In this document: positions 10,133 to 59,200 of the stretch, one piece after another
Layout: each line of letters opens with the position of its first letter
Position numbering within the stretch: position 1 is the stretch's first letter
Assembly (NCBI GenBank): GCA_030704615.1
Contig: CM060731.1
Coordinates: 52,576,001-52,640,000 of the forward strand
Direction: 5' to 3'
Source of the DNA: Takakia lepidozioides
Lineage: Eukaryota > Plantae > Bryophyta
Length of the DNA: 64,000 bases
Translations under genes and position numbers: made by a program
Notes under the pieces: model-generated
Database searches by the model: none
What the model saw: the letters and a program-made list of their open reading frames with translations, nothing else
What the model was told of the DNA's origin: nothing

Positions 10133-11552
10133 TTTATTATCTCTTTTACTCTTACAGCTCTTTCCCCAGCTGCTACATAAGACACTCTGGAGATAGATTG
10201 CAGGGGCATTTCAGTGGTACATAAGAGTCCAAGATTCAGGTGAATTTGAGATGTTACCCGAAAGGCCATTCAACTGAAGTAGTCAATTTGGGGCTGAATG
10301 CGCTCGTGAGTGTAGGTGCCATGGCATGTACCATGTGGGGGTGTGTGCTATGGAGATGGCAATTTGGTGTTCATTGCCAACGATTGGCATACAGCACTGC
10401 TGCCAGTGTATTTGCAGGCATACTATCGCGACAATGGATTCATGGAATTTGCTCGTTCTGTCCTTGTCATCCACAATATGGCTCATCAGGTGCCTCTTCA
10501 GTGCTCTTCCCTTCCTACTTACCTTGCAGACTCTCATAGCAAGCCTTGTGAAGCACCTTGCATATCAGTAGCTTACTTTGTGCCTGTCTGTGCAGGGTCG
10601 TGGTCCGATGTCTGATTATGGAAGACTGGGTTTACCAAGTCATTATGTGGATAAGTTCCGACTGTTTGACCCTATTGGAGGGGAGCACATGAATATTTTC
10701 ATGGCAGGCCTTATCACTGCGCATCGCATTGTGACAGTGAGCCATGGCTACGCATGGGAGTGTCAGACACCAGATGGAGGGTGGGGTTTAGATGGTGTTA
10801 TCCGAGATCACAGCTGGAAACTGCGGGGTGTGGTCAATGGTATTGATGACATGGACTGGAATCCTGAGCTAGACTCCTATCTCAAGAGTGACGACTTCAG
10901 CAACTACTCTATAGAGACTTTGGAGAGTGGGAAGGCTGCATGCAAGGCTGCACTGCAGCGGGAGCTGGGATTTCCAGTGCGAAACAAGGTACCATTGATT
11001 GGGTTCATTGGGCGCCTTGATTACCAGAAGGGGGTCGATTTGATAGCTGAGGCCATGCCATGGATGATGGACCAAAGTGTGCAGCTTGTGATGCTTGGTA
11101 CTGGTCGCAAAGACCTGGAAGACCTGTTGCGTCACTTTGAAGGCTTGTACCATGACAAAGTGCGCGGATGGGTCGGGTTCTCTGTCAAAACTTCCCACCG
11201 TATCACCGCAGGTGCAGACATCCTACTGATGCCATCTCGATTTGAGCCATGTGGGCTCAATCAGCTGTATGCCATGCGGTATGGGACGGTTCCTGTGGTA
11301 CATTCTGTGGGTGGGCTGCGAGATACAGTGCAGCCATTTGATCCCTTCACAGAGTCTGGCCTCGGCTGGACATTTGAGCAGGCAGAGGTTTCAGGTTTGA
11401 TTCATGCTCTTGGGAATGCAATCTGGACATACCGCGACTTCAAGAGCAGCTGGGCAGGCATCCAACGGCGTGGAATGTCGCAGAACCTTAGCTGGGACAA
11501 TGCAGCTCAACAGTACGAGGAAGTGCTCGTGGCTGCTAAGTACACCTGGTAA
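6933..11552 (+). CDS. SS2: Soluble starch synthase II, plastid-targeted. Exons 6933-7379, 7884-8406, 8731-8795, 9022-9099, 9512-9622, 9876-9920, 10316-10489, 10596-11552
   Basis: Spliced product has a transit peptide, [21 protein letters not shown] (KTGGL motif), [29 protein letters not shown] and [16 protein letters not shown], and ends AKYTW. All introns are GT-AG with consistent phases, matching the 8-exon SSII layout. Confidence 0.95.
10108..10130. repeat. (CT)n microsatellite in a starch synthase intron
   Basis: Direct reading of the sequence. Confidence 0.9.
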
Positions 11553-25224: not shown

Positions 25225-28200
25225 CATTCTTTGCTTTGTTTTACCCGCCGAGATTGCTTGACAGCGGGTTGGCTGCTCAGTCGAAGCTTCTCGTCTCAGC
25301 TGTTACCTGTTTTTGGATACTTCCCTGTTGTCACATTGGCAGTACCATGTCAAAGTCGCTCAAAGGCTCACTCAACCAGCTAACTTGCAGAATTCAACAT
25401 GATAATTTAGGGTCGATTCTGATAAGAGGGAAAAACAGGGTGAAATGTGTTGAAGAAGGTGCCTTCATTACCAGTGCCCGAGTTTATCATTGTGCTGCTG
25501 CTGCTGCGGCTTCTAGTTGACCAGTCACTATCTACCCATGCAGGTTTCTTGTAGCTATTGATCCATCTGGTACATTTCCAGCTTTGGTGATGCAACCATG
25601 CACCTCCAATGCCCTTTTCCAGGGCTGCTAGGCTTGCACACGCACTGCAAACGCACACAAACATGATGTGGTCGAACTTCACCCCTTCCCCCATCATTTG
25701 CTTTCAGGTCTCCAAAGCCCCATACAGCGCCCCTGCTCTGCACAGTTGAGTTGGGTGCAATTGCACTCTCCCTTTCCTCTCTGCTTTTGTTTGCTATTCA
25801 AAGGTAGGATTCCTGCCCTTAGTTTAAATTTCAGTCTGGTGCCGAGAGTGGGTAGACCCTTGAGGTCATCCATGATGTCCTCCCCCATGTCACAGACTGG
25901 AAACAAGTCCAGGGAAGTTTTCTGCCTAACTTCATTTTCATCAGACAATTTTCTGGTAACGGACATGGCTTTGGACACTACAGCCTCTAAGTCAGTAGGG
26001 TTGGGCCATTTGCTGGAACAATTCTAAAAGGAGAATGTCTGTCAGATTACCAGATGTCATTCTGAACATTGCCCCTGCCCTGGTGGACATGTATGCCAAA
26101 TGTGGGTGCATCGAGGATGCCAAGGGAGTGTCCAACACTATGGCTGAACGAGATGTGGTGTCGTGGAGTGCGATGCTTGCGGGGTATGCACATCAGGGGT
26201 GCGGGATGGAGGCTCCAACCTATGAGCAAATGATGGGGGAAGGGGTGAAGCCCGTCGACATAAGGTTTGTGTGTGTTTGCAGTGTGTCTGGCAGCCCTGG
26301 AAAAGGGCAAAGAGATCCCTGGTGACATGATCAAATCTGCAATTGTTCCAGATGTCATCCTGAACACTGCTCCGGTGGCCATGTATGCCAAATATGGTAG
26401 CATTGAGGATGCCAAGGGAGTGTTCAACACTATGGCTGAATGAGATGTGGTGTTGTGGAATGTGATGTTTGCAGGGTGGTATCACACTAGTTCCTATGGT
26501 CAATTGCATCTGCTACACTCTGTAATCTGACAGGCATTCACCTTTTTGCCTCGGTTGTCCCACCAGTTACTGGGGTCAGAAAAGTATTCATCCCACAACT
26601 TCTTCTCATATCTGTTATCTGTTTTTGGATACTTAGGGACGACTCTGATAGCAGGGGAATTCATGGTGAAATATGTTGAAGAAGGTACCTTCATTAGCAG
26701 TGGGCCTTGTTCTATCAATTGCGCTGTTGCCATAGCTGTTTCCAGTTGACCATCTACCCACTCGTAGCCATTGCGCTATTGAAGAAGGTGCCCCCCCTTC
26801 CCCCATCATTTGCTCATAGCTCTCCAAAGCCTCCATCCCACGTCCCTGCCGTGCATACCATGCAAGCATCGCACTCCACAACACCACATCTCGTTCAGCC
26901 ATAGTGTCGAACACTCCCTTTGCATCCTAGATGCACCCACATTTTGCAAACATGTTCACCAGGGTTTTGTTCAGGATGACATCTGGTACAATTCCAACTC
27001 TGAAGATGTCGCCATGGACCTCTTTCCCCTAAGCTGCTAGGGCAGTGTTCAGATTGACATTTGGCACAATTCCAGCTTTGATGATATCCCTATGCACCTC
27101 TTGCCCTTCTCCAGGGTTGTCAGGCTTGCACGCAATTGCAAATGCACACAAACATGATGTGCTTCCCCCATCATCTGCTCATAGCTCTCCAAAGCCTCCA
27201 TCCCACGTCCCTACCGTGCATACCCTGCAAGCATCGCACTCCACGACACCACATGTCGTTCAACCATAGTGGCAAACACTCCCTTTGCATCCTAGATGCA
27301 CTCACATTTTGCAAACATGTTCACCAGGGTATTGTTCAGAATGACATCTGATACAATTCCAGCTCTGAAGATGACGCCATGGACCTCTTTCCCCTTTTCC
27401 AAAACTGCCAGGGCAGTGTTCAGATTGACATTTGGCACAATTCCAACTTTGATGATATCCCCATGCAACTCTTGCGCAGGGCTGGCTTGCACAAGCATTG
27501 CAAATGCACATAAACACGATGTGCTTCCCCCATCATTTGCTCATAGGTCTCCAAAGCCTCCATCCCACGTCCCTGCCGTGCATACCCTGGACCAAGCTGA
27601 CTCTCCCAAGAACCTTGTAAACATCAGAGAGGACTTAAGTGCGCAGCAACGATAAGGCTTAGTGGGGCTTAGTGCTTGAGGGAAAAATAAAAACATCGCA
27701 TTGGTCCATGAGAACCACCATTGTGCAGCTAAGCGAGCATAGATTGAAACACGACCTGCTAAGACCAAGCTGACTCTCCCAAGAACCTTGTAAACATCAA
27801 GAAGAATACCAAATCATGGTACTAACAGGAGCCAAAAGCCCACATTTGCAGGATGGACAAACTTCTTCACATCCTACATTATGAAAAAGCCACACCTTGC
27901 GATTGCGATTGTCCCACCATCATGAAGGATCGTAAAAAACTCATGCGAGCTTTGCTCCGTGCTGCAAATTCAGGGATGAGTCTGATGAGAGGGCAAAACA
28001 GGCTGAAATAGGTCGAAGAAGAAGGTGCCCTAACCACATTGTCGTCGACCTTGTGTCATGACCCATGGGGGATTTGACAGATCGTGAACCCAAACGGACC
28101 TCTTGTGTGTGCTGCTTGTGTCTGTAGTCAGATAATGTCGGATTGTCCATGAGAACCACCACGGTGCAGCTGAGCGAGCAGAGATTGAAACGCGGCCTGC

Positions 28201-34985: not shown

Positions 34986-35469
34986 ACTGTAGAGTGAAAA
35001 CGACCGAGGGAGGGAGGGAGGCGCTGAGCAGCCACAGTGTTCTACCCTGGGTCTATTCCAAATTCCAATATGTACCCTGTGAGGCAAGGGTCCGGGGTCG
35101 TGGACATGAATACGGCTATTGCCTTGGGAAAGTGGCAATTGCATGTGGGGCCCATTTGGCGGCTGCAGGCAAGCGCTAACCGCTAGGAGCCATCAGAACG
35201 GCACGACCACGAACCGGTGGTCCATGTAGGGCCCCTGACCGCTGCCACCTTGAAGAGCACAGTAATATCCTTGTTGAAAGTTCGGTAAAACGATGAAAAG
35301 GTTTCTTGAGCAGAGTTTGGAGTTCGTTGTTCCTCATCGTGTAGAGCCCAATGGAGCCCAAAACAACTTGCATGAATGTTGTTGAAAGCTCACTAGCACC
35401 CCTCAGTAAAGGACCTTGTCACAATGTTGATGCTGTCGGATTTTCGATCACAAACCTCTACCTTGGAGC

Positions 35470-36689
35470 ACGGAGCAGAGCTGGCATGAGTTTTGTAAAG
35501 ATAGTTCACGATGGTGGGACAACCGCAATCGCAAGGTGTGGCTTTTTCTTAATGTACGATGTGAAGAAGTTTGTCCATGCTGCAAATGTGGGCTCTTGGC
35601 TCCTGTTAGTACCATGATTTGGTATTCTTCCTCATGTTTACAAGGTTCTTGGGAGAGTCAGCTTGGTCTTAGCAGGCCGTGTTTCAATCTCTGCCTGCTC
35701 AGCTGCACCGTGGTGGTTCTCACAGACCAATCCGAGATTACCTGACTACAGACACAAGCAGCACACACAAGAGGTCCTTTTGGGTTGATGGTCGGTCAAA
35801 TCCTCCATGGGTCACGACACAAGGTCAAGGACAATGTGGTGAGGGCACCTTCTTCTTCGACCTATTTCAGCCTGTTTTGCGCTCTCATCAGCCTCGGCCC
35901 TGAATTTGCATATTGAATATGGTGTCTGCATCCAAGTTGTAGCCTTTCATTTGCCATATGTTGCAGTGCATCTGTGGTGGTTTGGAATGACTTTGACAAG
36001 TTAGTGCCGATGTGGCAGCAGGAAAGTATTCAAAAACAGGTAACAGAGACGGGGAGAAGCGTTGGAATGAACACTTCTCCGACCCCAGTCAATGGTGGGA
36101 CAATGGAGACAAAAAGGTGAATGCCTGTTGGAAGCAGACGCAAGTCAGCATAGGAACTAGTGTGATAAGTATGGTTGGGGTGTTTGCTGGAAGAATTCTA
36201 GGCTGTCATTGTCTGTTGCTAGCAGCAAAGCAAGGATGTATGCATGATTTGTGCAGAGGCATGGATAGCTGAAGGAGCAGGGATGGCGTGTGGGTCCAGA
36301 TTCATCCAAGAGGGCCAGATTTCAAGCTCCAGATTACCTATGACTCCCTGTGGAAGGATAGCTACAAGAAACCTGCATGGGTAGATGGTCAATTGGAAGC
36401 CGCAGCAGCATCGGCACAATTGATAAAATCAGGCACTGCTCATGAAGGCACCTTCTTCAACACATTTCACCCTGTTTTTCCCTCTTATCAGAATCGGCCC
36501 TAAATTTTCATGTTGAATTCTGCAAGTTAGCTGGTTGAGTGAACCTTTGATAGTTTGGAGTGACTTTGACATGATACTGCCAATGTGACAACAGGAAAGT
36601 ATCCAGAAACAGGTAACAGAGACGAAGAGAAGCTGTGGAAAGAATACTTTTCTGACCCCAGTCAATGGTGGGACAAACGAGGCCAAAAG
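35470..36689 (+). other. Upstream exons of the PPR-DYW gene encoding OSB-type PDF motifs: PDF1 ~35470-35535 + 35726-35838 (frameshifted); PDF2 36022-36116 + 36300-~36432; first half of PDF3 36595-36689
   Basis: Translations: WHEFCKDSSRWWDNRNRK|TNPRLPDYRHK...WVDGRSNPPWV; EKRWNEHFSDPSQWWDNGDKK|IHPRGPDFK...KPAWV; EKLWKEYFSDPSQWWDKRGQK|. Each motif is split by a phase-0 intron at the same position. Confidence 0.75.
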
Positions 36690-36882
36690 GTGAATGCCTG
36701 TTAGATTACAGAGAGTAGCAGACGCAATTCAGCATAGGAACTAGTGTGATAAGCTGAGTTGGGTGTTTCCTAGAACAAAACTAGGTTGTCATTGTCAGCT
36801 GCTAGCAGCAAGGCAAGGATGAACGCATGATTTGTGCAGAGGCATGGATAGCTGAAGGAGCAGGGGTAGAGTGTGGGTACAG

Positions 36883-39807
36883 ATTCATCCAAGAGGGCCA
36901 GATTTCAAGCACAAGATTACCTATGATTCCATGTGGATCAATAGCTACAAGAAACCTGCATGGGTAGATGGTCAACTAAAGGCAGCAGCTGCAGCGGCAC
37001 AGTTGATAAAATCAGGCACCTCAACCTTGACCACAGCTTCTAGAAGAGGATCAAGAGAGGGAGTCCACAATGCCTCTTCTGGCACTTCTGGGCATGTGAA
37101 GATGCTTTGTGATGCAGGCAGACTGAAAGAGGCTCTACAGACTTTAAACCAAGGAGGCATTTCAGCAGATTCAGAAACGTATGTCTGTCTCTTGCATAAG
37201 TGCATCAAGGTGAAAGGCCTGGAAGCTGGAAAGCAGGTGCACACTCACATTATCCAAAGTGGATTCACGCCAAATGTTTTTCTCCTCAACACCCTTGTCA
37301 ACATGTATGTTAAGTGTGGGAGCATCATGGATGCTCACCAAGTGTTCAACAGAATGCCTCAACGATCCTTGATCACGTGGAATATAATGTTGGCAGGATT
37401 TACCAAGCATGGGTGTGGTAGGAATGCTTTGGAGACCTATGAGCAAATGATGGGGGAAGGGGTGAAGCCCAACCACATCACGTTTGTGTCCGTTTGCAAA
37501 GCGTGTGCAAGCCTGGCAGCCCTGGAAAAGGGCAAAGAGGTGCATGGTGACATTGTCAGAGCTGGAATTGTACCAGATGTGATCCTGAACACTGCCCTGG
37601 TGGACATGTATGCCAAATGTGGGAGCATCGAGGATGCAAAGGGAGTGTTCAACAATATGGCTGAACGAAATGTGGTGTCGTGGAGTGCGATGCTTGCAGG
37701 GTATGCACAGCAGGGGCGCGGGATGGAGGCTTTGGAGATGTATGAGCAAATGATGTGCGAAGGGGTGAAGCCTGACCACATCACATTTGTGTGCGTTTGC
37801 AATGCGTGTGCAAGTCTGGCAGCCCTGGAAAAGGGCAAAGAGGTGCATGGCGACATCGTCAGAGCTGGAATCGTACCAGATGTCATCCTGAACAATACCC
37901 TGGTGGACATGTATGCCAAATGTGGGAGCATCGAGCATGCAAAGGGAGTGTTCAACAATATGGCTGAACGAAATGTGGTGTCGTGGAATGCGATGCTCGC
38001 AGGATATGCACAGCAGGGGCGCGGGATGGAGGCTTTGGAGACGTATGAGCAAATGATGTGCGAAGGGGTGAAGCCCGACCACATCACGTTTGTGTGCGTT
38101 TGCAGTGCGTGTGCAAGCCTGGCAGCTCTGGAAAAGGGCAAAGAGGTGCATGGCGACATCATCAGAGCTGGAATCGTACCAGATGTGATCCTGAACAATA
38201 CCCTCGTGGACATGTATGCCAAATGTGGGAGCATCGAGGATGCAAAGGGAGTGTTCGACAATATGGCTGAACGAAATGTGGTGTCGTGGAGTGCGATGCT
38301 CGCAGGATATGCACAGCAGGGGCGCGGGATGGAGGCTTTGGAGACGTATGAGCAAATGATGTGCGAAGGGGTGAAGCCTGACCACATCATGTTTGTGTGC
38401 GTTTGCAGTGCGTGTGCAAGCCTGGCAGCCCTGGAAAAGGGCAAAGAGGTGCATGGCGACATTGTCAGAGCTGGAATTGTACCAAATGTCATCCTGAACA
38501 ATACCCTGGTGGACATGTATGCCAAATGTGGGTGCATCGAGGATGCAAAGGGAGTGTTCGACAATATGGCTGAACGAAATGTGGTGTCGTGGAATGCGAT
38601 GCTCGCAGGATATGCACAGCAGGGGCGCGGGATGGAGGCTTTGGAGACGTATGAGCAAATGATGTGCGAAGGGGTGAAGCCCGACCACATCACGTTTGTG
38701 TGCGTTTGCAATGCGTGTGCAAGTCTGGCAGCCCTGGAAAAGGGCAAAGAGGTTCGTGGTGACATCATCAGAGCTGGAATCGTACCAAATGTCATCCTGA
38801 ACACTGCCCTGGTGGACATGTATGCCAAATGTGGGTGCATCGAGGATGCAAAGGGAGTTTTCGACAATATGGCTGAACGAGATGTGGTGTCGTGGAGTGC
38901 AATGATCGCAGGATATGCACAGCATGGTTGTCATAGGGAGGTTGTGCAACTATTTGAAGGAATGCAAAAGAACGGCTTGAAGCCGAACAGTATCACCTTT
39001 ATATGTGTTCTCTCTGCATGCAGCCACGCTGGCCTACTGAATGAAGGAAGACGCTACTTTCATTCCATGAGTCAAGATCATGGTGTCACTCCGACAGTAA
39101 AGCACTTTGGCTGCATGGTGGACCTTCTTGGTCGTGCGGGACAACTGGATGAGGCAGTGGACCTGATTAATAAAATGCCCATAAATCCAGATGCTGTGGT
39201 GTGGAAGGCCTTGCTTGGTGCCTGCAGAATCCATGGCAATGTGGAGATGGCTGAACGTGCAGCAACATCTATCCTCACGTGGGATGAACAGGATACCGTT
39301 ACTTATGTGTTGCTCTCAAACATCTATGCTGCAGCTGGCAGGTGGGATGATACTGCAAAGGTGAGAAGAATGATGAAGGTCAAAGGGGTTAGAAAGGAGC
39401 CAGGTCGCTGCTGCATTGAGGTTGGCAACAGGGTGCACACCTTTGTTGTAGATGACAAGTTGCATCCCAGAATTAAGGAAATCCATGCTGAGCTGAGAAG
39501 ATTGTCTGGGCAGATGAAGGAGGCGGGGTATGTGCCTGACACGCGCTTTGTGTTGCATGATGTGGGGGAGGAGGAAAAGGAATTTTCTCTTTGCCACCAC
39601 AGTGAGAAGCTGGCCATTGGTTTTGGGCTGATCAGCACGACCCCTAGGACATCTCTCCGTCTCATCAAGAATCTTCGAGTGTGTGGTGACTGCCACACCT
39701 CCACCAAATTCATCTCAAAGATTGTTGGCCGAGCAATTGTTGTACGGGACGCTTACCGCTTTCACCACTTTGAAGATGGGATTTGTTCTTGTGGGGATTA
39801 CTGGTGA
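36883..39807 (+). CDS. PLS-class PPR-E1-E2-DYW (PG-type) organellar C-to-U RNA editing factor; large terminal exon starting with the second half of a PDF motif
   Basis: Open frame with ~20 L/S/P motifs including P2-L2-S2, then E1/E2, PG box (KEPGRCCIEV), HSEKLA and LRVCGDCH zinc/deaminase motifs, and terminal DYW. The start codon and 5' splicing are uncertain. Confidence 0.93.
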   Translation: MHPRGPDFKHKITYDSMWINSYKKPAWVDGQLKAAAAAAQLIKSGTSTLTTASRRGSREGVHNASSGTSGHVKMLCDAGRLKEALQTLNQGGISADSETYVCLLHKCIKVKGLEAGKQVHTHIIQSGFTPNVFLLNTLVNMYVKCGSIMDAHQVFNRMPQRSLITWNIMLAGFTKHGCGRNALETYEQMMGEGVKPNHITFVSVCKACASLAALEKGKEVHGDIVRAGIVPDVILNTALVDMYAKCGSIEDAKGVFNNMAERNVVSWSAMLAGYAQQGRGMEALEMYEQMMCEGVKPDHITFVCVCNACASLAALEKGKEVHGDIVRAGIVPDVILNNTLVDMYAKCGSIEHAKGVFNNMAERNVVSWNAMLAGYAQQGRGMEALETYEQMMCEGVKPDHITFVCVCSACASLAALEKGKEVHGDIIRAGIVPDVILNNTLVDMYAKCGSIEDAKGVFDNMAERNVVSWSAMLAGYAQQGRGMEALETYEQMMCEGVKPDHIMFVCVCSACASLAALEKGKEVHGDIVRAGIVPNVILNNTLVDMYAKCGCIEDAKGVFDNMAERNVVSWNAMLAGYAQQGRGMEALETYEQMMCEGVKPDHITFVCVCNACASLAALEKGKEVRGDIIRAGIVPNVILNTALVDMYAKCGCIEDAKGVFDNMAERDVVSWSAMIAGYAQHGCHREVVQLFEGMQKNGLKPNSITFICVLSACSHAGLLNEGRRYFHSMSQDHGVTPTVKHFGCMVDLLGRAGQLDEAVDLINKMPINPDAVVWKALLGACRIHGNVEMAERAATSILTWDEQDTVTYVLLSNIYAAAGRWDDTAKVRRMMKVKGVRKEPGRCCIEVGNRVHTFVVDDKLHPRIKEIHAELRRLSGQMKEAGYVPDTRFVLHDVGEEEKEFSLCHHSEKLAIGFGLISTTPRTSLRLIKNLRVCGDCHTSTKFISKIVGRAIVVRDAYRFHHFEDGICSCGDYW
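37430..38920 (+). repeat. ~5 near-identical 303-bp tandem units, each encoding one P-L-S triplet (101 aa)
   Basis: The GAGAxxTATGAGCAAATGATG anchor occurs at 37432, 37735, 38038, 38341 and 38644 (exact 303-bp period). Confidence 0.97.
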
Positions 39808-39909
39808 AAGGATGTTTTCTTGGAAAGATGCGAGTGTCTTGCTTCATTCAGTGATCTGTGTAGCTACTCAGATCATCCACCACCTGAGAGTACCATGATG
39901 TACTGTTGA

Positions 39910-40353
39910 GCCTAGAATTAAATTGCTGAGTTCCATCCACAATGAGTATCGCCGGTCAAATGGATTAAAGGGACATTGCCTTGTAAAACCGTGACAAACG
40001 GCCACTAAAAGCAGCTCGTTCACAACAGAGATGGTGGGGGCATCAGTGGATGAAGCTGCCGGCCGATAGTAGCCTACAAGTATCCCACCATGACAGATAA
40101 GTAGCATTTGTGGAACTCAGACCATTCCTTGCAACAACTCACTCCATTATAACTGGAGGATCTACTTATTTCTAGTTGAGCCTCACTGACTCAATGAGGG
40201 TAATGTTTGCTCTTATGCCATGGCATGATGACAATGTATTGAAAATGGTCAGTTCATGACTGTTGAAGGAAATTTGGCAGACTGGCTCTACTGTATTACA
40301 CAAGAGATAATGGAGGGAGAGTCACACACCTTCCATGTACAAGGGCTGGGCTG
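39910..40353 (-). pseudogene. Duplicated fragment of the M16 peptidase gene (exon 10, flanking intron sequence, end of exon 9) just 3' of the DYW stop
   Basis: Direct repeat of ~16192-16655 with small indels. A frameshift in the copied exon gives YYRPAASSTDAPTISVVNELL followed by a shifted frame. Confidence 0.9.
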
Positions 40354-41122
40354 GGCTGTGGCATATCCACAGGAAATGATAGTGGGGTCTACCCGGCATA
40401 GGTGGGAAGTCAGCCCATATTTGCACTTGACTGAAGGGGTGATATTGGACTGACTTTGGTGACAGTGGATGGAAATCAGAGTGCTGTCCTAATTCTGGGT
40501 TTGGGTGGTGGAGCTTCTCCAAAGCTTGAAGATGGAAGTGAATACGAATTTTGATGAGCTTGATTAGAGGGGCAGCCCTGTGCACAAGTTTGTTCAGCAT
40601 CTTAAATTTGCACATGTTTGTTTGTTTCTTGTGGTGTGGCTTTGGATGGAGCCCTTGACGAACTTGCATGAATATTGTCAAAAGCTATCCTTAACCCACC
40701 AAGATCCAATCCCATGGTGGCTGCTTGAAAGTTCATATAGGGATTGTAAGGGTATTTGGGTATGTTGTTATTGATTGATGCCGCTGGACTCCCTCACACT
40801 ATAACATCGGTTTGTGCATGTTGGAGTTCAAGGTTGGGGCACAGAGGCCACCCACTTCAGAACACAATTGCTACAGTTGGAGACCAGATTTGGGAGCATG
40901 TATGAAACAACTATGCATAGTTTCATGCAACAAAAAGCGATACTGCCAGTGTCCACCGACGCAGGTCTCTATCGCTGGTGTGACTCCCAGTGTTCTCAGT
41001 AACTACTTGAGCTGCCAATCTCAAACAAGCCAAAAAACTCTCCCCTCCAAGAAAAGTGAGGTCTTTTTCTCTTGCTTCCAGTAACCGTCCAACATCCAAA
41101 AAACGAAGCTTTTGGTCCGGCA

Positions 41123-42260
41123 TGTGGGTTTAATTAATATCAATTAAGTTACACCCAACTAAGGGATAATTCATGTGAATAATGAGAGGAAGATATACTT
41201 AATGTACCTTCTTTGGCTATGAGGGCACAGCCATCAAAAGGGGATTTGTAGCGAGCTGTGGTGCGATGCTCAATTGTTCCGCAAAAGGTTGGGATTTTCG
41301 TTTCCTCGCATGTAAGTTTTGGTATAAAGTAAGCATATAGGAATAATGCCTCTCAAGTTTGCGGGGTCCCTATCCATTAGAGGATGGTCCAGGAATTAAA
41401 AAGGGGGATATATGTATCCCAGCCGCATGAAAAATAAAATCGACTCAAAACGGAGTTGACATTTGCTAGTTTGTATGGAACTTTTGAAGCTGGTGGTAAG
41501 TGGCATGGCCCCACATGGCCCCAGGTGGCTTTTGGATGTGGGGCAGAACGTTGTAGAATAGAGAATGATCTAGAGGGAGCCAGGAAAGTTTTTCTATAGT
41601 CGAGCCAGGACTCTACCAGCGTCAGAGGAGCGTAGTGGAGTGTACTAGAGGCTCCAGAGGGGGGGGGGGGGGTGGTATCCTGTTAGCACAGTGTGAGCAT
41701 GAGCATGGCGTGAGCACAACCCACGGTCATGGGGATTGTATGTTTTTAAAACCGCGGTCATAGGAATTGCATGTTTCGAGCATTTATAGGGAGCACTTGC
41801 ACCAAAACTATAAACTATATGATCTATCTTTCAATTTCGCATTGAAAAATTAAAATTGAGTAGTAATTTCGGGAGTGAGAGTTTTAATTTCGCATTGAGA
41901 AATTAAAGTTAAGTAGTAGTTTCGGGAGTGAGAGTTTCGTCTCGATAAATTATCCATGGGACATGACAATCTTTAAGGTCTCTTGGAGTCTTAGCGCCAT
42001 TTTCTCAAGTCTATCATGGAAAGGGCCTAGTATCGGGTGAGGATAGCGTGAGGAAATCCCATTGTAGGGTAACATGTTTATCATGTATAGGGGTTACTTG
42101 TTTCTTAAGTGTTGCTGTGAGGGCCTATGTAAGCATTAAAAATAATTTCACAATTTTCTTAGTTTCTCAATTTTGGTTTCGCTGAAGAATATTCGGAAGG
42201 CATCGTAGGAATATACGGTATATTCGCTTGTGCTCATCTGAGCATGCTCACTCGCTACCC
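41123..42260. mobile_element. Probable LTR-like or other repeat remnant
   Basis: TG...CA bounded (41123-42152), TATA-like CATTTATAGGG, internal ~54-bp tandem duplication (41833-41937) and TGAGCA motif clusters. No TSD verified. Confidence 0.35.
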
Positions 42261-42349: not shown

Positions 42350-42700
42350 CCATGATCATAGGATATGCTCAGCGTGGCAAGTTTTCAACAAGATGGCTAA
42401 TTGAGATGTGGTGTTATGGAGCAAATTACCAGAGGATATACTCAACATGGTTGTTCTATGGAGGATCATGAAATGTATGAGCAAATGCGACAGAAGGGGG
42501 TGACTCCTGACAGGGTACATCACTTGCATTCTCCATGCATGTAGCAACTAAGGAGGCCTGGAAAAGGGCAAAGAGGTCTGTGCTCACATTGTCAAATCTG
42601 GAATCGTGCAAGATATCATACTCCAGACATCCCTTGTTGACATGTATGCCAAATGCAGGAGCATGAAATATGCACGACTAGTGTTCAACAATATGGGCAA
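42350..42700 (+). pseudogene. Older degenerate PPR (P-L-S) fragment of the same family
   Basis: GAGATGTGGTGTTATGG, TATGAGCAAATG, CCTGGAAAAGGGCAAAGAGG and GACATGTATGCCAAATG match the array unit, with frameshifts. Confidence 0.8.
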
Positions 42701-43696
42701 ATCACCTTGCCTGGTCTCGATATGAAAAGACTGTCGCTTGTGAGAAAATGCTTCTTGGATGTCATGCAAGGTGAGATCACCACAACAGCTTATGTGTCTC
42801 TAGGTGATGCGAACCTCCATCTAAGCCAACCTCGCTCAAATGCATCGCTTCATCTTTATTGCACACCATTACAACTTTTTCCTTAGTTCAGAAAGAATTG
42901 AATCATTTGTACAGAATGATTGAGAAAGCTCAGTTCCTAACTTCCTTAAGTTCGGTAACCGGTAACTCATGGCAAGCCAAGTACAACTTCTATAAAGATA
43001 AGTGCTAGTTTTTTATGTGTATACAACAGAAAACAGATCACATCAGAAAAGTATTTATGAACAACGTTCAGTGAAAAAGAACAAGGCCCAAGGAGTCATT
43101 TACCAAAGAAGATAATGGACTGTTACAAGGGCAGGAGGGACGAAACCACAAATGAAAATCTGTTGCAGAAATCTTGCCCCTATAATAACATTCCAAACCT
43201 TGGGGGAAATAAAAAGAGGAACAAGCAGATGAGTTAAGACCCAAGTGCTGCTATTCACGTGTGCTACTGATAATTTGCCCTGCCTCAACCAAATGAAGCA
43301 AGAAAAGAAGACTCTCCTGAGCTACACAATTAGAATGCATTATGGAGCTTCTTATCGTTCTCCGCTGGCACCTCTCAGAGGGAGAAGGGCAGGATGGCTT
43401 GCTTGACACCTTGCCTACTCGGGGCCAAAGCCCTTTGCCATCAAATTCAATCATAATGATCCACCAAGTCCCAGATATACCAATTAAGAAAACCTGAAAG
43501 CCCCGAGAAGGGCGACCTTGAGAGCTCAAGCTATGGAACTCGCCCCCTCTCTGGCATGCTGCTGTTGGAACCCTCCCAACCTTGATGCAAAGAAGTCTTA
43601 TAAACAATGATCTGTTGCCTTCTCTCCGAAAATCCCCAATGACAGCAATGTCAAGAGAACGTATGCATGGTAGACAGACAGAGATGGTATCGGTTG

Positions 43697-51763: not shown

Positions 51764-52402
51764 ATGACTAAGGCACAGACAGTTCTGATGGAGTTGCAGA
51801 GCAAGGCAATGGCAGGGCCTGGTTCCCCTCTCCGATCCGCTGTAAGCAGCGCTTTCAAAGGCGACGGCTTCCTTCCCGTCAGTACTCCGTCTTCAGGCAC
51901 CAGCGAGAGCCACTCATCGAAGGAGGGATTGCATATCCGGGCCATGGCACCCAAGAAGAAAGTCAATGCCTACGATGACAAATGGAGCAAACAATGGTTC
52001 GGAGCTGGAATTTTTGTAGAGAACACAGAGACGGAGAATGTTAACATTGTGAAGAAACTGGAGAAGAAGAAGCTGTTGAGCCAATTGGAGAAGGCAGGCC
52101 TGCTGTCCAAGGCAGAAAGAGCAGGCTTGTCTCTCTCAGCAATTGAAAAGTTAGGATTGTTGTCCAAGGCTGAAAACCTAGGGCTGTTGAGCCTGGCCGA
52201 GAAATTTGCAACAGCTTCTCCTCCAGTTCTTGCATCTCTTTCCCTCCCTCTTTTTGTAGCATCCATAGCCACGGTGGTCCTAGTACCTGACGACTCATCA
52301 GTGCTGGTGTTGGCACAGAATATAGTTGCTGCCTTGCTGCTAGCTGCAGCTGGAGGCCTTTTCATAGGATCAATTCTTCTCAGTGGATTACAAGAAGATT
52401 AA
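51764..52402 (+). CDS. RIQ2: DUF1118 thylakoid protein (RIQ2/At1g74730-like), intronless; true start may be ATG 51788 or 51809
   Basis: Transit peptide followed by MAPKKKVNAYDDKWSKQWFGAGIF, repeated LLSKAE.LG motifs and two C-terminal hydrophobic helices. Confidence 0.85.
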   Translation: MTKAQTVLMELQSKAMAGPGSPLRSAVSSAFKGDGFLPVSTPSSGTSESHSSKEGLHIRAMAPKKKVNAYDDKWSKQWFGAGIFVENTETENVNIVKKLEKKKLLSQLEKAGLLSKAERAGLSLSAIEKLGLLSKAENLGLLSLAEKFATASPPVLASLSLPLFVASIATVVLVPDDSSVLVLAQNIVAALLLAAAGGLFIGSILLSGLQED

Positions 52403-53254: not shown

Positions 53255-56200
53255 TCAACTAGTTGTTGATGAGAGCAAAATCCTATATATTCTGCTACCC
53301 CTTTCGACAGCATGGCTCTCCCAGTCTGTCGGTACACCTAGAGGATTGCAACTTAACCAGCCATCCTCATCACAGTTTCGGGCATCCAAGTGCTCATTGC
53401 TAAGGGAAATGTGGTCGCCACCATAATGGTCAAATTCATTTCTCATGTTGGTTGCAACAATCTTCACATCTGACTGCAAAAACACCTGTCCCATCACATA
53501 CAACCGATCTCAGCAGCCGCCCCCTCTTAATGCACATGAGGCTCCATGAATGGGTATGGCAAAGTCTGTTACTCAAACTGGCTCTGGCCCTCACCTAAGC
53601 CTGTAAGTCTGAATGATTAGACTTGCACACCAATGTCCTTCACTAATAATGTCATTCTTATGTGAAGAAAGCGAGTTTGTTTACGAGTGCAACGCCAAAT
53701 TTGCTTGCGATAGTATTGTGCAACCAGTACAGCTCATCAATCTGGTTCTGTACTCAACAGACTGAATAACCTCTCGCAGGGGAAGGGGACAAGGATCCTG
53801 GCACAGGACAAGCAAAGGACAGGAAGGGAACACCCACCTTGCCATTTGGGTCAAGAACATTGATGATGTCCTCAACCAGCCCTCTTTGCACCATTCTCCA
53901 TCGGTTAGTGGGATTGTTGAACTCTGGGTCTGGGCACTATTCCAACCACAGCTATGTAGTCAGTGGAAAGTCTATTTAACAGTGAAGGAAAGTTAAGTTG
54001 TCTTGAAGGTGCCTGACAAGCAAACATACACCTAACAAGAGTGAAATGCAAGTCTACTTAGATGGACTCATTGGACTTCACATCCCGTAGCATTGATGCC
54101 ATACACTTGCCTGGTGATAGATGGCAGGAAGTGTCAGAAAGCCCCCTTCCAATAAAAGAAGGCTTGTTCCAAGCATTATAACCATGCTCATGACCAGAGA
54201 GTAGCCTTCTCGAACAATTTCACATCTCACCTGAATTGCCACTAACTCGCAACGACCAGGATAAGTAGCAACAATGGTGTGAAATGCAGAGGTTGCGTTT
54301 GCTTTCACAAAATGACTGCACAGCCACACACATACCCAACAGGAACCCTCATACATAATTGATGTAATGCTTCAGTAGAGAAAACACTCTTCCATTCATG
54401 CAAGTCAATGCATACTTTTTGCATATTCCACCGAAGGGTTGGTGGACATTTACAAAACCTGATGCCTGTGATGTAATTTCCACACCACCCAAGAGTCAAT
54501 TCCTTCCGCACACATTGTGAATTGGATATACAAAATATATTCATCACAATCGAAAAAATCTTTGGGCGGGTTTCTATGATTATGGAAGAGGTACATCAGT
54601 TAACCTGAGACTAAATTGGAAAGCAAGGAGGCAGTCAACTTACACATTAGACAATTGAAGGCTGGAAACTTCCATTGAGCATTGCTTCACAAGCTGGCAT
54701 TGGAAGCACCCACCACCACAACTAATACCTATCAGTACTTGTTCGAACTTGCCATTCAGTTGGTGCTGAAATGCAATCAAGCAAAGGCGAACAAACTAAT
54801 TATGAAGTCTCTGTCTGTGTCTCTCTCCTCCCAAACTGGGTGCGGGGTCTATGGCCACAGGGCTACAGCAAACAACGTCTCATGAGTACATTCTCTCTCT
54901 CTGCACAAATTGCCAGCATGCCATGTGACCAACATACATTAGGAACCAGCTTCTGTCATGAGATAGGAATATGTCTTTGTATGTCTGTCTTAATTGAGAT
55001 ACCAAAAGCAATCAATGCTCAACAAGAGCTCAAGGTACCATCCTTCATTTGATACTGTCATGACCAGAAGAACTCTGGAGTCTCTGATCTTGCCTCGTTT
55101 TTGTGCCAGCACTTGTCATCTACAACGAAGGTGTGCACCCTGTTGCCAACCTCAATGCAGCAGATTGAGAAGAGAAATGTGCAGAGACGCAATTGATGTG
55201 TTTGAGAGGGGCAGCAGCAAAACCTTGGAGTTGATTTCCAGACCGAGGAAATTTCGAGAATCAGGAAATTTTCTTGCCATCCCCAACATGCAGACACCAC
55301 TTCCTGCCACATCAGAGCATAAGGCCACAATCAGTTGACTGTTACATTTTAAGAGCATGGGCAAGTTGGTCAAGACATCCAGGTGAAGACTTACCGCTGC
55401 CAATGTCGATTGTAAGTGGGAGAGAGGGGTCCTTGAAAACTGATACCCAGTCCGGAGGTGTTGGAGACATCTGATATACAGCACGCAAAAATAAGGTAAT
55501 AACTTTTTCCTCTGCATACAGGGCAGAGGCACTGAAACAGTAAAAAATACTTTACTTATTTATTTATTTATCTCATGATTAAACAGGCCCCTGTGAGGAT
55601 AACAACTCAGCAATGAGGCAAAATAGAGTGTGCACACAAAAAACACAGACAGACACACACAGAGAGATGTGCCCATCCACATACAAGATCCAAAGCAGCA
55701 ACTCCTGGTAGTGAGTTGCCCTTCAAAGCTTCCCAAAGGGCAGAACTGCCCTGAAACAAATGGCTCATATGACCAGACATCCCTGTTGCTGTTGCAGCGT
55801 CCATTGCATCTATGCCTCCCACCATGGTGATACAACCCTTCTTACTTATGTAGCCCAGTAACCTCGCCACAGCCCTTGCACCACTTTGAGTAGCTGCTGA
55901 CTCACCCATTCCCACAGGCCCAATCCAGAGAACCATCTGCACAATGAAGATATGTAAGAGAGGTCAGAGAAGAATTGCATAGCCTGGTCAGCAGAGAGAG
56001 GATAGGACTAGTCAGTAATGAGGAATCTCCAACAGTTGAAGTCCCTGTCGCTGAAGGGGCAGTTTAGCCATGGCAGAATGCACGAATATCTTGCCTGCTT
56101 TCCTCTTATTGATTGCAACTTGAATAGCAGTGTCCAAAGGGCAAGGGTAAAGCCATTTATCAAGGATGGTAAGAGTTGAGAGAGGAAAGCATTCTAGGGT

Positions 56201-59200
56201 AGAAGCTCCGACATTGTTACACATTTCTCAGATTCCTTGTCGATGGAATAGAGACACTGATGAAAAAAATGTACTCGTAGTTGGCTCACTTAGAGTAATT
56301 GTCAAAGTGACAATAAGAAGGAACGTGGCAGGCATATTAGCGTGGATACTAAAGTTGACTTTGCCTTGTGGACTATTTAGAAGGTTGTGAAAAACTAACT
56401 TGGAATGAGGTTAGTTATTAAGGGGTCCCCTATTTGAGCCACCATATTTGTTCTATCAAATGGACCTGATTTTTCTGCTAATAATTATAAGATACAATAA
56501 TGCACCACCACTCATTTGATAATTACACAAGGCAAAGGGCATGACCTTCAATACTATGTAGTCACCTTTCAACAGGTCAGATAAAGAAAACCAATTCGTC
56601 CCTGGACTAGAACTTCTAAGTGCTTTCTTTACTCTTCTGATGCAGGTAAAAGACTGGTGCACCTTGCTGTTACTCAGACAGGTAGCCAGCTGAGTTACGG
56701 ATGCCACCCCAATGTCAACTGCTCTCCAGCCTGAATATCAAGAAACTATGGATAGTAAATGCAGGTGAGAGCATACGGGCAATCTCTTTCATCAAAATAG
56801 AGTGACAACATTTGCAACTTACAGCTCTAGATCAGTGTCTGCAGAGGAATGGAACAATGATACTGTGGGTCAGCACCATTACAGCCTATCATGACATCAC
56901 AGAATCCAAACGTGAAAGACATTGAAAAGTCACAGATGGTCTTAGCATTTGGCCACACTCTCTCTTTCGAAAGAGAGTGGACATCCTAGCTTTCAGTCAA
57001 CAGACATCTATGGGATACCATGACAGAATGTACTCAAGCTGTTCCCTGCGAACATTGGCTTGCCATAGCCTTACGGCCATTGACCCCGCAGGAAACTAAC
57101 CCTCCCGGAGGCTTTTGTGGGGTTCGTACCCACCAGGGTTTAATACTGCGACAAAGACATAACAAAAGAAACATAAAAATATGCTTACCATCAGGGATGG
57201 AAGAAACATTGAACGTCTGAGGTGGGTGCACCAATGAAGGCTCTCTCACACACCAGAAGTCTGAAGGAAGTAGCAGTTCGACTTGGTGGGCTTGCGCTAG
57301 CCTGACTAGGTCCATGGCCTCTTTTGTCTCCTCTTCTGAATTCTTAAAGGTCAAAGGCACAGTGACTCCCATAGTGTTTAGGAGCGTCAGAGCCATTGCC
57401 CCTGTGACATAAATCTTGTCACACTTGCTCATGAGTGATTGAAGCACAGCTATTTTTTCTGTCAGCCTTCCACCTCCAATCTGCAAAATGACGGAGAATA
57501 ACAAGATGATGAGAATTTGTTCCAGCATGTGTGGGAAGGGAGTCATCTTTCTTTTTAACAGCAAGACCAGGCAACCTGCCTGTTTGCACAACCCGTAAGT
57601 GCCCATCATTGATGCCCTATCCTCATGACAGGGAGATATGCCGTGCAAATCCTTATTTTATCCCCCTTCCCTCAACCTCAAAAATCCCTCCCTCTCTCTC
57701 TCTATGCTCCCAACAGTATACCAAGGTAAGTCCCACTACTGGAGTGAGCCCCCTTTTCCCTCTTATTCCGCCCAAACTGAGCACGGGGTCTATGGCCAGA
57801 AGCGTTTGGCAAACAGCATCTCATGAGCACCTTCTATGCTCCAAATAGTGGCATCACAGCTATGTTTACAGGGAAATTAAGGGGTAAATGTGTCTGTGGT
57901 TCTACATCCACCCTGTTGGCCTTCATCCTACTACATTTGGGCAATATTGCAGGGAGCGTTCCCGGAGTCCTTTCCGCTTTGCCTGGAAGGGGTGCAAAAC
58001 CCAGAACACCTATGTAAATGCAATTGAGAACCAATGCATTTATTTATGTTTCGTGTTCAGGCAGCATCTACATGTATACCCATCTGTGTACTCCCTTTCC
58101 TCTCTCTCCATCCTTAACCTCTGGTGGAGCCTCCTGAGAGTCCCAAGTATCTGTCTGCACAAGCCTGCCAATGCATGTGTGCATACATGACTTTGAAGGT
58201 GTGAGGAACATGCAAGAGCTAGGAAAGGGTGCCTGGGTCCTTGCACAGCCTTCGTGAGGAATGAAAGCTCCTTCTCAAGCTGTAGGCCTGCAAGCCTTGC
58301 GACTGTGAAACAAGCTGCCCCAACTGTTGAAGCCAAAACTCTGTGCGATAGTGAGAATGCATCGTTCACTAGACAGTCAACTTTTGCAGTGAGTTTCTTA
58401 GCAAACTCAGGGTCATTAGCAGACTCCTCCTTGCGTTGCCGCAAGCTCTCTAGAAGAAGAATGCCTCCATTGGGCAGCGCCTCAATCTGTTTCTCCACCT
58501 CCTCTCCAATCACTCCTTTTGCCAATTGAATGGGTTGTTGCAACAAATGTGCAAGGGTCTCTGCATCAAGCACCTCATGATTTATAAGGGCATTCTGATC
58601 ATGGGATGAACTTCTGTGTATGTGTGTGTGTGAGAGACAGAGAGAGCAAGAGAATGTACTCATAAGACGTTGTTTGCCATAGCCTAGAGAGAGCAACAGA
58701 GAGAGGGCCAAAGGATCTAGTGATTAGACGTTCTTGCTGCAGGCTGGTTGCCATATACATTGCCTGTTGGGACACAGCAGAAGAGGGTGGCGAGGGGGAG
58801 GAATGGAGCTCACTGCCATCATGGCCCGTAGTCAGACTTACATGTAAAAGTGAGATTGATGTCAGCCTTCCAGAATTTTCTCAAGAACAATCTAATCTAC
58901 TGTATTGGATACATCTACCTGATTTTCTTCCTTAAGTCTCGAGCACTACTCTAGAAAACAGACAAGGAGGGACAGGGATATAATGGACTCATAAGACGTT
59001 TGCCGAAGCCTTCTGGACATAGTCCCCAAGCCCAGCTTGGGCAGAGAGATTGTACTCATAAGACGTTGTTTGCCGTAGCCTTGTGGCCATTGACCCCGCG
59101 CCCAGTTTGAGCGGGAACAAAAGGGACAGAACCTACCTCTGTCAGGGGCTGACGTTGGTAGTAAGACTTACCTCCATATAAAGAATTAATCCGGGTTTTC

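Follow-up and report, generated by a model that had tools for sequence, protein, structure and literature searches.

The 64,000-nucleotide stretch analysed here (hereafter the window, whose coordinates are used throughout) comes from the bryophyte Takakia lepidozioides (GenBank assembly GCA_030704615.1, contig CM060731.1, positions 52,576,001 to 52,640,000 of the forward strand) and contains a pentatricopeptide repeat (PPR) gene with a tandem array of nearly identical 303-bp units in its long last exon. This exon is an unbroken open reading frame (ORF; 36871-39807, plus strand) of 978 codons, whose translation ends in DYW and a stop codon. In the ORF product, Pfam recognised PPR_2 (5e-109), E_motif (9e-20), Eplus (1e-5) and a DYW_deaminase domain (PF14432; 1.3e-42) that covers model positions 1-93 of 93, and the translation contains the zinc-ligand motif HSE...CGDCH, the PG box PGRCCIEV and the final DYW. 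The period of 101 residues, the P1(35)-L1(35)-S1(31) register and the Pfam PPR families place the product in the PLS class, with P2-L2-S2, E1 and E2 following the last P1-L1-S1 triplet (Pfam, translation). Since the frame, the Pfam domains, the PG box, the zinc ligands and the terminal DYW are all in place, the gene appears to encode an intact PLS-E1-E2-DYW factor of the DYW:PG type, predicted to act as an organellar C-to-U RNA editor. PLS-DYW editors are targeted to organelles, where the edited C lies four nucleotides downstream of the sequence they bind.

Tandem Repeats Finder (TRF) reported a single array (37426-38924) with a period of 303, 4.9 copies, 94% matches and 0% indels, in frame with the ORF. 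One unit corresponds to one P(35)-L(35)-S(31) triplet of 101 amino acids. Pairwise DNA identity among the units is 92-96%; the protein's flanking triplets reach only 46-50% identity to them. Any two units differ at 11-22 sites, with no indel or frame break across 1.5 kb, and the two edge units are 92-94% identical to the others, the inner units 96% to each other. With its start at codon 20 of a P motif and its end at codon 13-14 of P2, the repeat has its duplication breakpoints inside P motifs.

What distinguishes the units from one another? In PPR proteins, position 5 and the last position of P and S motifs choose the RNA base. Of the 101 residue columns, 17 vary among the units, and 12 further columns show synonymous change only. 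Five of the six code columns are among the variable ones (P5 S/N, P35 D/N, L35 D/N, S5 T/N and S31 N/D, with L5 fixed as V), including all four of the P and S motifs; 12 scaffold columns vary as well. The hypergeometric probability of finding at least five of six code columns variable is 4.2e-4; P is 0.002 when the test is confined to the four complete inner units, in which 4 of 6 code columns are among the 13 that vary. Each of the five code toggles is a single-base change, a transition in four cases and a transversion in one. CpG decay was ruled out as the source of the code changes, because only the P35 change is a CpG transition. The alleles recur out of order, with P5 running S,N,S,N,S and S5 running T,N,N,N,T, the latter as linked haplotypes ACT GCC and AAT ACC. 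A 606-bp higher-order repeat was considered as the cause of the alternation at P5 and rejected, as only 2 of 14 informative sites alternate and the pairwise identities lend it no support.

The P and S motifs each carry a canonical code pair, and these pairs differ between triplets (Table 1), so that a defined, non-periodic target is predicted. By the PPR code, the S and P motifs would read, from N to C terminus, C, C/U, A, G, C/U, U, C/U, G, C/U, U, G, A. An earlier, sequence-only reading of the locus had described five near-identical 303-bp units, variation at five of the six code positions, and the out-of-order runs and linked haplotypes given above, and on all of these the present analysis agrees with it. 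Its count of about 15 variable residues in 101 becomes 17 here, and the enrichment stands. Its comparison with transcription activator-like effectors (TALEs), that is, a constant scaffold with variable specificity residues, is fair as a description.

Table 1. Features of the PPR gene and its upstream module, in window coordinates
Feature	Position	Strand	Details	Basis
Tandem duplication of a two-exon module encoding an OSB-type PDF motif (WWD...PDFKHK)	35965-37019	+		spacing 573-583 bp, 84-88% identity
Long open last exon of PLS-E1-E2-DYW (DYW:PG type) PPR editing-factor gene	36871-39807	+		ORF list, translation, Pfam
Older L-S motif pair, upstream of array	37171-37368	+	S-motif code N/S; ~50% DNA identity to units	motif register
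Triplet 0, edge unit	37369-37671	+	P N/N, L V/D, S T/N; first 57 nt of P outside repeat	92-94% identical to other units
Tandem array, 303 bp x 4.9 copies	37426-38924	+		TRF; pairwise identities 92-96%
Triplet 1	37672-37974	+	P S/D, L V/D, S N/N	motif register
Triplet 2	37975-38277	+	P N/D, L V/D, S N/N	motif register
Triplet 3	38278-38580	+	P S/D, L V/N, S N/N	motif register
Triplet 4, edge unit	38581-38883	+	P N/D, L V/N, S T/D	motif register
P2-L2-S2 triplet	38884-39192	+	only first ~41 nt inside repeat; P2 code S/N	motif register
E1 and E2 motifs	39193-39396	+		Pfam E_motif, translation
DYW cytidine-deaminase domain	39397-39804	+		Pfam PF14432, 1.3e-42

Is this build peculiar to Takakia? 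In a search with the whole protein, the best matches were only 56-60% identical and came from Diphasiastrum, Cryptomeria, Ginkgo, Ceratodon and further assemblies; 24 of the 120 top matches have at least three triplets at ≥85% identity. A second search used the C-terminal region only and is thus free of bias towards repeated arrays; here, adjacent triplets reach ≥85% identity in 25 of the 120 nearest proteins. High divergence among the motifs of a single PPR protein, a premise of the sequence-only reading, is therefore true of classical factors (the best adjacent-triplet identity in Funaria PPR77 is 0.46) but not of these relatives. For comparison, the synthetic consensus PPR-DYW protein P0195 reaches 0.86. 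The protein-database searches did not return the ORF product itself (at most 60% identity for the whole protein and 71% for the C-terminal region; exact look-up empty), and a search with a single 101-residue unit returned four distant matches only.

Pooling both searches gave 37 proteins with at least three triplets at ≥85% identity, which fall into five groups by unit consensus: 19 from Diphasiastrum (a clubmoss), 11 and 5 from the ENA assembly ERZ25073694, and one each from Ceratodon (a moss) and Cryptomeria (a conifer). The near-identical triplet build is thus common in seed-free plants. In the three multi-protein groups, P5, P35, S5 and S31 are variable in 55-100% of the proteins, the mean over the other 95 columns being 12-27%; in the two single-protein groups, P5 and S31 are the only code columns that vary. 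Ranked by variability across the first 24 proteins, columns S31, P5, S5 and P35 come first and L5 next, the code columns being variable about twice as often as the most variable other columns. The residues that relatives use in these columns are, with few exceptions, N, T or S at position 5 and D or N at the last one. Code-focused variation is thus a general rule for young PLS arrays, of which the Takakia locus is a clear example and not a unique one. The same evolutionary mode seems to have operated independently in the clubmoss, the moss and the two ERZ25073694 groups, the single conifer protein lending weaker support. As to the ERZ25073694 proteins themselves, they form two separate PPR-DYW families, each with its own master triplet (the two triplets are about 65% identical), and in P0129 and P0143 some adjacent triplets are 100% identical.

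The same proteins indicate how array length changes. Between paralogues whose flanks are 83-95% identical, gaps measure exactly 101 or 303 residues and lie inside the array: P0089 and P0119 are separated by one 303-residue gap, with flanks 92-95% identical, and a single 101-residue gap each separates P0070 or P0102 from P0108, and P0029 from P0087. Such whole-triplet gaps between young paralogues are direct comparative evidence of in-register triplet gain and loss. In these other lineages, the N- and C-terminal parts of paralogues are 85-95% identical and the array units 83-92%. With flanks as similar as the units, these are young gene families, and their homogeneity mostly reflects family youth; array-specific homogenisation across paralogues was rejected there on the same grounds.

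Nei-Gojobori counts on the four complete Takakia units separate scaffold from code. For scaffold codons, the proportions of synonymous and nonsynonymous differences (pS and pN) are 0.109 and 0.023, and the resulting pN/pS of 0.21 implies that selection has been acting since the duplications. For the four P and S code codons, pN is 0.159, or 1.46 times pS. In other arrays, code-codon pN relative to scaffold pS is 0.85 (Ceratodon P0057), 1.21 (ERZ25073694 P0089) and 1.42 (P0054), with scaffold pN/pS between 0.15 and 0.38. Across four independent arrays, pS among units is alike, at 0.11-0.14. The scaffold is under purifying selection, and the code codons change at about the neutral rate or faster.

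Have the units exchanged sequence with one another? Among them are 34 variable sites, 14 of which are informative; 13 of the 34 are CpG transitions, which recur easily and so contribute to incompatibility between sites. The four-gamete test was failed by 60 of the 91 informative site pairs, giving a minimum number of recombination events (Rm) of at least 7, or at least 4 without CpG sites. Simulated tree-only histories, matched for the number of variable sites, reached 60 incompatible pairs with P = 0.001-0.002 at CpG rates of x1-10 and P = 0.028 at x30. A test modelled on the pairwise homoplasy index (PHI) was not significant on the units (p = 0.69; 0.20 without CpG sites), incompatibility being independent of distance, and a GENECONV-like test gave one nominal pair only (p = 0.013, with no correction for the 10 pairs compared). 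At S5-S6, the two-base haplotypes (T-A and N-T) are found again in units 0 and 4, and PPR pseudogene fragments (26.0-27.4 kb) carry both of them. This marks them as old alleles of the family, not new mutations, and favours some exchange or mixed ancestry. The fragments at 25.5-27.6 kb were also considered as recent conversion donors and rejected: their identity to the units, 74-90%, is below that among the units themselves.

Our reading of these data is that unequal exchange built the array and that some reticulation occurred. Edge-unit divergence, the site mosaic and the whole-triplet gaps between young paralogues are what lead us to explain unit gain by unequal exchange. For the code differences, point mutation plus selection suffices, because nearly all toggles are single-base changes. 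The sequence-only reading had gone further, proposing that unequal crossover or gene conversion shuffles a small set of alleles and thereby generates new RNA specificities. In-register unequal exchange survives from that proposal, through the edge effect, the mosaic and the whole-triplet indels, but shuffled alleles are the less likely source of the specificities, given the single-base toggles. The "recombinationally reprogrammable editor" that it envisaged is likewise not borne out: neither the PHI-like nor the GENECONV-like test is significant, and single-base changes are enough.

Together, we consider it probable that one P1-L1-S1 triplet was amplified in register, with its scaffold conserved and its code residues switched by substitution and selection. 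Unequal exchange between neighbouring P motifs would add whole 303-bp triplets, a step suggested by the breakpoints within P motifs, the divergence of edge from interior units, the site mosaic and the whole-triplet indels elsewhere. The helical scaffold would then be held by purifying selection, while position 5 and the last position of P and S motifs would switch among canonical code residues, at a rate near neutral or higher. Each triplet would thereby come to read a different trinucleotide, and the protein would have a defined, non-periodic target. Recombination would alter unit number and add to the mosaic; substitution filtered by selection would be the most likely source of the code differences. 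The gene itself would be one member of a very large, young, lineage-specific family derived from the same master triplet.

The size of this family can be gauged from public contigs. More than 100,000 short contigs match 35400-39900 at 90-99% likeness, a figure that is not a copy number, and summed depth on this interval exceeds that on the single-copy flank at 39909-40242 by about 3-4 orders of magnitude. The multicopy signal is as strong over the upstream PDF-motif exons as over the PPR part, and run X1 contributes 23,784 contigs at ≥99% likeness on this 5-kb stretch. The pile-up, set against the single-copy downstream flank, points to a very large and near-identical family that includes the upstream exons. 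The contig joints listed skip 479-1102 bases, none of them a multiple of 303, and thus give no sign of unit-number variants here, as far as short contigs from a multicopy family can tell. PPR families of hornworts, Takakia and lycophytes comprise 1,583-3,256 genes and expanded mostly via dispersed duplication (PMC13386178).

Several points weigh against in-register amplification followed by selected substitution, or limit what it can claim. Of the five variable code columns, two vary in an edge unit only (P35 in the first, S31 in the last). The code-codon ratio of 1.46, which comes from five units, is not significantly above 1 and leaves room for relaxed constraint. The target is a prediction from the PPR code, and the array structure is that given by the assembly. 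Evidence of expression consists of one exact 340-nt contig that lies in the unique 3′ flank and comes from a run whose identity as RNA is a guess. Finally, all protein analyses took the long exon 36871-39807, without the upstream PDF-motif exons.

Alternatively, ongoing conversion and unequal crossover might homogenise the scaffold and re-deal pre-existing code alleles as the main route to new specificities, in a TALE-like concerted evolution. Such re-dealing would account for the mosaic with its Rm of at least 7, the rejection of a tree-only history and the edge effect, and it gains from the S5-S6 haplotypes, which in units 0 and 4 and in the pseudogene fragments represent old family alleles, from the similar pS of the four independent arrays and from the whole-triplet indels between young paralogues. 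We nevertheless regard it as unlikely: the PHI-like test remains non-significant with or without CpG sites, only one pair of ten is nominal in the GENECONV-like test, 13 of the 34 variable sites are CpG transitions and the code toggles are single base changes. Moreover, the non-array parts of the Diphasiastrum and ERZ25073694 proteins are as similar as their units or more so.

A broader version of the idea, which we put forward as speculation and rather doubt, treats the PLS-DYW factors of seed-free plants as natural designer proteins. A lineage-specific master triplet would multiply inside genes and from one gene to another, the scaffold would be kept uniform and units re-dealt through continuing unequal exchange and ectopic conversion, and selection would hold or switch the four code residues of each triplet. 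If true, members of one species would be polymorphic for the number and order of units, and novel specificities of editing would arise on population time scales.

Improbable, in our view, is a neutral by-product, in which the gene is a recent redundant or non-functional copy and the code residues vary first merely because no other surface positions are less constrained. PPR fragments broken by stop codons do lie in the same window, the code-codon ratio is near 1 and not clearly above it, and expression is only presumed. The ORF, however, is intact over 978 codons with a complete DYW domain, and the scaffold pN/pS among units is 0.21. The toggles use only functional code residues (N/S/T and D/N), where drift would give other single-step replacements too, and in 24 proteins the code columns are about twice as variable as the most variable others. 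That the array or its mosaic is an assembly chimera of reads from near-identical paralogues is very improbable: the large family (23,784 contigs at ≥99% in run X1) does invite copy switching, but no indel or frame break interrupts the 1.5 kb, differences at 11-22 sites between units make reads of a few hundred bases uniquely placeable, and comparable arrays occur in several independent public assemblies.

Outside the array, the 3′ copy of the PDF-motif module lies directly upstream of the long PPR ORF and continues into it, providing context for the gene. Contigs of runs X5 and X6 show a GT..AG joint at 36114/36298, and a third copy of the module, apparently frame-shifted, lies near 35500-35800. 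At 25560-27611 (both strands) and 42380-42701 there are PPR fragments that share 70-90% identity with the array units, some of them interrupted by in-frame stops; they carry both S-motif haplotypes (N-T-A and N-N-T types). An isolated 53-nt match at 55111-55163 (minus strand) is 98% identical to 39408-39460, at the beginning of the DYW domain. At 41829-41938, a 53-bp unit is repeated 2.1 times in tandem with an 89% match. GC skew is strongly positive (0.16-0.22) at 36001-42000, across the gene, and near zero or negative in the rest of the window. The neighbours are ordinary plant genes: a starch-synthase-like glycosyltransferase exon at 10578-11549 (plus strand) and a DUF1118 protein at 51764-52399 (plus strand), with phosphoglycerate-kinase exons at 57037-58711 (minus strand).

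How does the locus relate to known systems? TAL effectors of Xanthomonas likewise consist of near-identical tandem repeats that vary at specificity residues, and recombination changes the number and order of their repeats. They differ in being bacterial DNA-binding proteins of unrelated fold and origin with single repeats of 34 residues, so that the likeness is one of analogy only; in the ORF product, Pfam gave only PPR/TPR-type families and the DYW domain, and thus no TALE-repeat homology.

The closest relatives by design are the PLS-class PPR-DYW editors, such as Physcomitrium PPR56 and PPR65 and Funaria PPR77, which share the PG box, HxE...CxxC, the terminal DYW and the architecture (P1-L1-S1)n-P2-L2-S2-E1-E2-DYW as given in PMC9478123. 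The triplets of these classical editors are diverged (0.46 in Funaria PPR77), unlike the five triplets described here, which are 92-96% identical in DNA. Moss PPR56 has already been produced in E. coli together with a target (PMC10482289). A precedent for the variation is found in the Restorer-of-fertility-like (RFL) genes of flowering plants, in which positions 5 and 35 are hypervariable on otherwise conserved motifs and whole motifs are gained or lost by homologous recombination and unequal crossover, altering the predicted target (PMC5075784). The excess of replacement at code positions (1.46 x pS versus a scaffold pN/pS of 0.21; column P = 4.2e-4) resembles this pattern. RFL proteins, however, are P-class, lack a deaminase, are encoded in gene clusters and act on mitochondrial transcripts of cytoplasmic male sterility, whereas the Takakia array is built from the PLS triplet of an editing enzyme and its units are far more alike. 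Instead of the P-class array without E or DYW that marks an RFL protein, Pfam found PLS triplets followed by E1, E2 and DYW.

Growth by duplication of motif blocks has precedents too. In radish Rfo genes, a block of five motifs was duplicated internally in tandem (PMC2848758), and for PLS (PCMP) proteins array formation by internal motif-block duplication was modelled by Rivals et al. 2006, as cited in PMC2848758. The Takakia locus resembles an early stage of that process. As far as the model is conveyed there, it was inferred from old, diverged arrays, and near-identical units or the differences between them are not addressed. Synthetic PLS-DYW editors, finally, repeat a consensus P1-L1-S1 scaffold in which only the recognition residues are changed (PMC9478123). 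One of them, P0195, combines its adjacent-triplet identity of 0.86 with a C-terminal part 71% identical to that of the Takakia protein. Such editors are engineered, whereas the present protein is natural and has 12 variable scaffold columns besides.

A full-text literature search found no description of near-identical PLS triplets with code-focused variation in editing factors; Gutmann et al. 2020, which lay outside this search, might mention them. The pattern is widespread and, apparently, undescribed, as a variant of the known PLS-DYW editors with a designer-like array of near-identical triplets.

The locus is one of many, and its own importance is modest. The question it bears on is how the hundreds to thousands of site-specific RNA editing factors of land plants originated. 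Together with the 37 proteins found elsewhere, it would show one route at an early stage, wherein triplets are added or lost in register, the scaffold is kept and change falls on the four residues that choose the base. Young arrays of this kind may serve as natural experiments, in which evolution itself reads out the positions that set specificity: P5, P35, S5 and S31, then L5 and, in one lineage, L2. By the same token, they may reveal which scaffold residues must stay, and this bears on the design of synthetic PLS editors.

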